Below are positions 28,309 through 28,584 of a DNA stretch of 64,000 nucleotides, in pieces. The notes beneath the pieces are model-generated. The model was not told where the DNA came from, did not search any database, and was given only the letters and a program-made list of their open reading frames with translations. Made by a program: the position numbers and the translations under genes. The DNA is from Hemiscyllium ocellatum (lineage: Eukaryota): positions 24,179,231 to 24,243,230 of the forward strand of contig NC_083435.1 of assembly GCF_020745735.1 (NCBI RefSeq), given 5' to 3'. Numbering within the stretch: position 1 is the stretch's first letter; each line of letters opens with the position of its first letter.

Positions 28309-28584
28309 GAATTCACATTTTTCAACGGATAACTACTGTTGAGATCAGTGATGACAGCAGCATTAAGAGATCGATGAGATTTGGATTTGATGGAAATGAC
28401 TTTATCAGTTTAGAACAAGACACAATGAGGTGGATCGCATCCAATCACATTGCAGTGATGACTAAAGAGAAATGGGATTCTGATGATTCCTGGAACAACT
28501 ACTGGAAAAGACACCTGGAAGAAGAATGTGTTGAATATTTAAAGAGATATCTGGAAGTTGGAAAGGAATATTTCACAAGGAAAG
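28309..28584 (+). CDS. MHC class I gene B alpha2 exon
   Basis: ctgacag|GA..AAA G|gtatgt, 276 nt, open. Encodes GIHIFQRITTVE..FGFDGNDFI..W..TKEKW..HLEEECVEYLKRYLE.GKE. Confidence 0.96.

Follow-up and report, generated by a model that had tools for sequence, protein, structure and literature searches.

MHC class I molecules carry a near-invariant disulfide, C101–C164, in the alpha2 domain, and one alpha2 exon of the epaulette shark Hemiscyllium ocellatum encodes Val at the first of these positions together with Cys at the second. We asked whether this exon belongs to a damaged gene or to a lineage that has given up the bridge. The window, i.e., the whole stretch of DNA that we analysed, comprises 64 kb and contains no runs of N. 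An initial annotation, made from the sequence alone, had described an intact alpha2 exon of the standard 276 nt with Val at 101 and a retained Cys164. It had offered two readings, a destabilising lesion or a lineage-level flexible alpha2 helix with a free thiol, and had proposed scoring both positions in shark relatives.

The description of the exon was confirmed. The exon is an open phase-1 frame of 276 nt without a stop, preceded by AG at 28307–28308 and followed by GT at 28585–28586. Its translation, (G)IHIFQRITTVE...HLEEECVEYL...FTRK, matched positions 93–177 of Pfam MHC_I (PF00129). When solved MR1 was aligned using phmmer, the Val fell on the Cys of QRMIGCE, and EEECVEYL and EEECIAWL had their cysteines in one column; a shark classical-type sequence, aligned without gaps, gave the same assignment of 101 and 164. 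The Val codon had been placed three nucleotides too early, at 28335–28337, where ACT encodes Thr100. The C101–C164 disulfide is therefore absent from the window gene.

The gene corresponds to a RefSeq-predicted protein of H. ocellatum, XP_060706338.1 (P0212), to which the alpha2 exon is 100% identical. All five coding exons of P0212 are open within the window and have canonical splice sites (Table 1). They follow the class I plan, i.e., one domain per exon, phase-1 junctions, lengths of 261, 276 and 279 nt, and AG/GT flanks. The groove domain (MHC_I, 4.4e-19) and the C1-set Ig domain with its cysteine pair (7e-18) place the product in class I. The alpha1–alpha2 intron (15880–28308) spans 12.4 kb and contains reverse-transcriptase ORF fragments on both strands, e.g., at 19470–20408 (-) and 26335–26826 (+). 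The RefSeq model ends one residue past the transmembrane exon (WKRPWRG; region 29203–29480). Unlike P0212, the bamboo shark prediction P0233 reads through the donor into a 39-residue tail. No transcript contig containing the P0212 protein is on record, and expression evidence for the locus was not found; an intron-poor JGI contig (L005) considered as a transcript was rejected as it turned out to be genomic DNA.

Table 1. Class I features located in the 64-kb window.
Feature	Position	Strand	Basis
Connecting-peptide/transmembrane end of an upstream family gene, remainder outside the window	46–381	+	tblastn with P0254, P0197 and P0196
Leader exon; 17 codons plus 1 base from the ATG (14354), GT donor at 14406–14407	14354–14405	+	tblastn, P0212 residues 1–17, 100% identical
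alpha1 exon; 261 nt, phase 1, AG/GT flanks, lone Cys (QRCIPRQ), Y7 to R, Y59 to F	15619–15879	+	tblastn, sequence, anchor table
alpha2 exon; 276 nt	28309–28584	+	Pfam MHC_I, 4.4e-19; 100% identical to P0212
Codon 101; GTT (Val), replaces class I Cys101	28338–28340	+	sequence
Codon 164; TGT (Cys), without partner	28527–28529	+	sequence
alpha3 exon; 279 nt, C1-set Ig domain, cysteine pair intact	28702–28980	+	Pfam C1-set, 7e-18; sequence; cysteine census
Connecting-peptide and transmembrane exon; RefSeq model stops one residue further	29203–29310	+	tblastn, P0212 residues 290–326, 100% identical
Dead alpha2 remnant from a different family member; good acceptor site followed by about 30 homologous codons that include GTT (Val) at 101, then unrelated sequence and a TGA stop	60290–60382	-	tblastn, sequence

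Relatives were gathered in two ways: the alpha2 exon was searched exhaustively using HMMER, and a full-length relative served as the query of a word-indexed search. Together these yielded about a hundred close sequences. The resulting family set comprised 99 distinct ectodomains from 13 shark species, ranging from Hexanchiformes to Carcharhiniformes (Hemiscyllium, Chiloscyllium with two species, Stegostoma, Rhincodon, Scyliorhinus with two species, Mustelus, Carcharodon, Cetorhinus, Heterodontus, Heptranchias and Pristiophorus). Identity of the ectodomain to the window protein was 53–100% within the family and at most 39% for every other class I protein retrieved, and the alpha1 exon of the window gene also aligned to family proteins. 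All members came from sharks in the one database search that covered this point, the best ray matches being 36–37% identical. The epaulette shark by itself contributed 24 distinct family ectodomain sequences, isoforms counted. The window gene is an intact, ordinary member of this non-classical MHC class I family, which is multicopy and specific to sharks. As the family occurs in both major shark superorders, it dates to the common ancestor of living sharks.

The known lineage that best fits this family is UEA. Two expanded class Ib families have been described in sharks, namely UBA, which derives from classical UAA, and the older UEA (PMC12562908, PMC10751288), the latter being credited in these two papers to Almeida et al. 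(2021, J Immunol 207:824). On the MHC chromosome, UEA belongs to a class Ib cluster that adjoins the adaptive MHC (PMC10751288). Like UEA, which is absent from rays and chimaeras, the present family had only shark members in the one database search noted above; it is a large multigene family, it is very divergent from classical UAA with at most 39% identity to any class I protein outside it, and its anchors for the peptide termini are not conserved. UBA is derived from UAA, UCA has been reported only from Squaliformes, and each of UDA, UFA and UGA has one or few copies; therefore, a multicopy shark family distant from UAA is, by elimination, most probably UEA. This assignment sets the family apart from the other lineages by their descriptions and not by a named UEA sequence, since the protein databases and clusters searched held no protein named UEA and the supplement of PMC10751288 labels its genes only as "MHC-Ib".

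We then compared the window protein with classical class I molecules (shark UAA, 6LUP; chicken BF2; HLA-A2). They share the exon plan, including a 276-nt phase-1 alpha2 exon, the alpha3 Ig disulfide and residues T143, K146, W147 and Y171. AlphaFold2 with the family alignment predicted, with high confidence, the canonical fold of class I (pLDDT 93.9, pTM 0.84), and this model, which is a prediction only, had a TM score of 0.94 to chicken BF2 and of 0.89 to shark UAA at 33% identity; no solved structure of a close relative was found. In contrast, the window protein lacks C101–C164 and is only 33–36% identical to the classical molecules. Of the anchors expected in a classical peptide-presenting class Ia protein (Y7, Y59, R/Y84, T143, K146, W147, Y159 and Y171), P0212 keeps R84, T143, K146 and W147 for the peptide C-terminus as well as Y171, whereas the N-terminal set is replaced (Y7 to R, Y59 to F and Y159 to H); the classical set is thus incomplete. 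In the family as a whole, V predominates in place of Y7, and H or Q in place of Y159.

Scoring of the shark relatives gave a uniform result at position 101. None of the 99 ectodomains has Cys at this position; Val was found in 86, Ala in five, Ile in two and Leu in two, all of them beta-branched or aliphatic, and the column ranks 151st of 272 ectodomain columns in entropy. All eight outgroups have Cys at both 101 and 164, and among the other, more distant class I alpha2 domains retrieved, 146 scored Cys at both positions and only a handful deviated. Codon 101 was GTT in all five genes read as DNA, i.e., the window gene and four relatives from two other species. Since Val101 is fixed across a shark-wide family and the window gene is intact, we rejected the reading of Val101 as a destabilising lesion. 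An error of assembly or sequencing at this codon has a negligible probability. We found no support for it; a change from TGT to GTT would take two base substitutions, GTT also occurs in independent assemblies of both other species and in the window's second fragment, and the residue is borne out by about 90 predicted proteins from 13 species.

A related possibility is that this copy is a decaying pseudogene and that Val101 is one of its lesions. The predicted protein stops directly past the transmembrane exon, the long alpha1–alpha2 intron is packed with reverse-transcriptase fragments, the records hold no transcript contig for P0212, and a dead alpha2 fragment lies elsewhere in the same window. 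However, none of the five coding exons is interrupted and their splice sites are canonical, Val101 is a family-wide feature whose codon was GTT wherever it was read, T143, K146, W147 and Y171 are kept, and the dN/dS of alpha3 against a bamboo shark relative is 0.26. Decay of the window copy is therefore very unlikely.

To describe selection on the family, dN/dS was calculated by the Nei–Gojobori method on the alpha2 and alpha3 exons. Values for alpha2 were 0.3–0.8 in nine of ten pairs and those for alpha3 were 0.26–0.64, and both exons are under purifying selection. In the closest pair, the window gene and bamboo shark L001, alpha2 carries 20 non-synonymous and 3 synonymous changes (dN/dS 1.5), which differs from alpha3 of the same pair (dN/dS 0.26; Fisher p = 0.036) and hints at diversification of alpha2 in this pair. 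We did not uphold a claim of positive selection on alpha2, because dN/dS exceeded 1 only in the closest pair and the values for the helix segment were inconsistent. Between the window gene (28702–28980) and L003:5069–5344, which are distant paralogues, dS was 0.05 for alpha3 and 0.69 for alpha2, suggesting that alpha3 is homogenised within the family by gene conversion.

If the classical bridge is absent, another pair of cysteines might take its place. The only cysteine pair conserved in the family was that of the alpha3 Ig domain, with C202 and C257 present in 96 and 98 of the 99 members, respectively. No compensating pair was found in alpha1–alpha2 across the 99 ectodomains; 37 of them have no Cys in these domains at all, and the others have single cysteines at varied sites. 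The window protein has two, the alpha1 Cys of QRCIPRQ and Cys164, and the two sites do not covary across the family. A Cys42–Cys164 disulfide between them was rejected, as the two sites lack co-occurrence across the family and would lie several strands apart on a classical fold. The lone alpha1 Cys (codon TGC, 15735–15737), near HLA position 45, occurs unpaired in 39 of the 99 members, and another lone Cys on the alpha1 helix occurs, also unpaired, in 12.

Position 164 was scored in 96 family members and is the third most variable of the 272 ectodomain columns. It is mostly a large hydrophobic residue (Leu in 29, Phe in 24 and Tyr in 11), followed by Ser in 10, Cys in eight, Asp in five, Gly in four, Val in two, and Thr, His and Trp in one each. 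Helix positions 158, 159, 162, 163, 167 and 170 are also variable, and L160, V165, L168 and L172 are conserved. The lineage-level reading thus held for the loss of Cys101, which is family-wide, and failed in two other parts: Cys164 occurs in only 8 of the 96 members and is not conserved, and a free thiol therefore characterises a small sub-clade, not the whole lineage.

We next examined whether the Cys164 of the window gene had been retained. A maximum-likelihood tree was built from the 99 family ectodomains and eight outgroups with columns 101 and 164 excluded. The window gene was placed inside an orectolobiform clade (SH-aLRT 99), where its neighbours have Y, S, D, T, V, L or F at 164. By parsimony, which is weak at a fast site and from which the history of 164 is read here, at least 24 state changes are needed; for Cys versus non-Cys, at least five changes suffice when regain is allowed, and 19 independent losses are needed when Cys is never regained. 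In an alpha2–alpha3 tree that included partial sequences, a loosely resolved group of 13 rows around the window gene has Cys in three, Tyr in six, Asp in three and Ser in one. At codon 164, the window gene has TGT, and the four relatives read as DNA have TAT, CTT, CTT and TCT, the TAT belonging to a close bamboo shark relative. From TAT, the codons TGT (Cys), TCT (Ser) and GAT (Asp) are one step each, whereas TGT to Asp takes two; this, we infer, is consistent with Tyr in the ancestral gene of the sub-clade. The Cys164 of the window gene is therefore probably a secondary gain, nested among Tyr, Ser and Asp paralogues and one transition away from Tyr, and its description as retained is probably wrong.

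Some evidence favours the alternative that Cys164 is the ancestral half-cystine, kept in a sub-lineage because a free thiol is useful, e.g., in redox sensing, covalent ligand capture or an intermolecular disulfide. The window gene has the exact motif LEEECVEYL in common with P0233 and P0197/P0256 of bamboo sharks, and P0233, which also has the transmembrane sequence of the window gene, is likely its orthologue. The shared Cys164 must then predate the split of the two genera, i.e., it is tens of millions of years old. Cys164 is also found in an early-branching clade (P0207, P0215 and P0266) and in Heptranchias P0166. However, retention requires the 19 losses in place of five changes, the nearest paralogues have Y, S or D and one close relative has TAT in place of TGT, only 8 of 96 members have the residue, and it occurs both with and without the lone alpha1 Cys, so that it has no fixed partner. 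We consider retention unlikely. The gene conversion indicated by the dS contrast of alpha3 and alpha2 weakens any single-site history in this family, that of a secondary gain included.

Taken together, these results make the following history of the family, which is most probably UEA, a likely one. The alpha2 disulfide would have been lost once, at the origin of the family, through Cys101 to Val, and an aliphatic residue appears to have been maintained at 101 since then. The residue at 164, on the lower face of the alpha2 helix, would thereby have lost its partner and its constraint, and would so have come to vary more than nearly all other sites in the ectodomain. If the 101–164 contact of the classical fold holds, residue 164 would pack on Val101, and a hydrophobic contact would stand in for the covalent staple. 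No longer fixed, 164 may covary with adjacent residues of the helix, where the groove has its N-terminal end, and contribute to the differences among paralogues. The Cys164 of the window gene would then be one of at least 11 states at this site, most likely derived from Tyr (TAT to TGT), and would be unpaired and, judging from the classical fold, probably buried. It could further be proposed that, following loss of the disulfide, residue 164 took on a role in determining specificity beneath the N-terminal part of a groove domain left without any disulfide, and that the thiol is functional in the Cys164 sub-clade, through covalent or reversible ligand binding or regulated dimers. The Schiff base formed by Lys43 of MR1 is comparable in principle to ligand binding by a thiol. 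We regard this extension as improbable.

A groove domain without a helix-to-sheet disulfide has a precedent within the MHC, as the class II alpha and class I alpha1 domains have repeatedly lost the equivalent cysteine pair and still fold (Wu et al. 2021, PMC8236899). However, the pair on the alpha2/beta1 side, which is the one lost in the shark family, is called well conserved in the same paper, where it is said to stabilise the part of the groove without Ig-domain support. Grimholt et al. (2015, PMC4364491) likewise treated these alpha2 cysteines as a hallmark and reported that the S and P lineages of teleosts conserve them. Among the retrieved matches, five other fish class I-like sequences (P0015, P0019, P0001, P0003 and P0091) also have a broken alpha2 pair, but these are single non-classical genes; four of the five keep Cys101 and have lost Cys164, P0091 has lost both, and none is a large, old family with a fixed residue at 101. 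Literature text searches for UEA with disulfide or cysteine gave nothing relevant; the defining J Immunol papers on the class Ib lineages of sharks lay outside the reach of these searches, and the family-wide absence of the alpha2 disulfide and the hypervariable 164 may already be in the literature.

The shark family thus manages without a bridge that is treated as a class I hallmark and as the staple of the groove half lacking Ig support (PMC8236899). Dozens of intact genes with neither the bridge nor a substitute pair constitute a natural experiment on the need of the MHC fold for this staple. A redox checkpoint has been reported for the loading of classical class I molecules, and the question is raised of how molecules without the disulfide are loaded without this checkpoint. 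For the window exon, the suspicion of a broken gene was a false flag, and the leftover Cys should not be over-read; the absent alpha2 disulfide and the hypervariable 164 make a tidy structural point about an ordinary family member.

Beyond the gene described here, the window contains only class I genes and repeats, with parts of three family members in all. The stretch at 88–465 resembles 29085–29480, these being the transmembrane-exon regions of two family genes. Two near-identical open frames of 126 codons, at 30061–30438 and 33752–34129, lie about 3.7 kb apart and look like the two ends of one inserted element.
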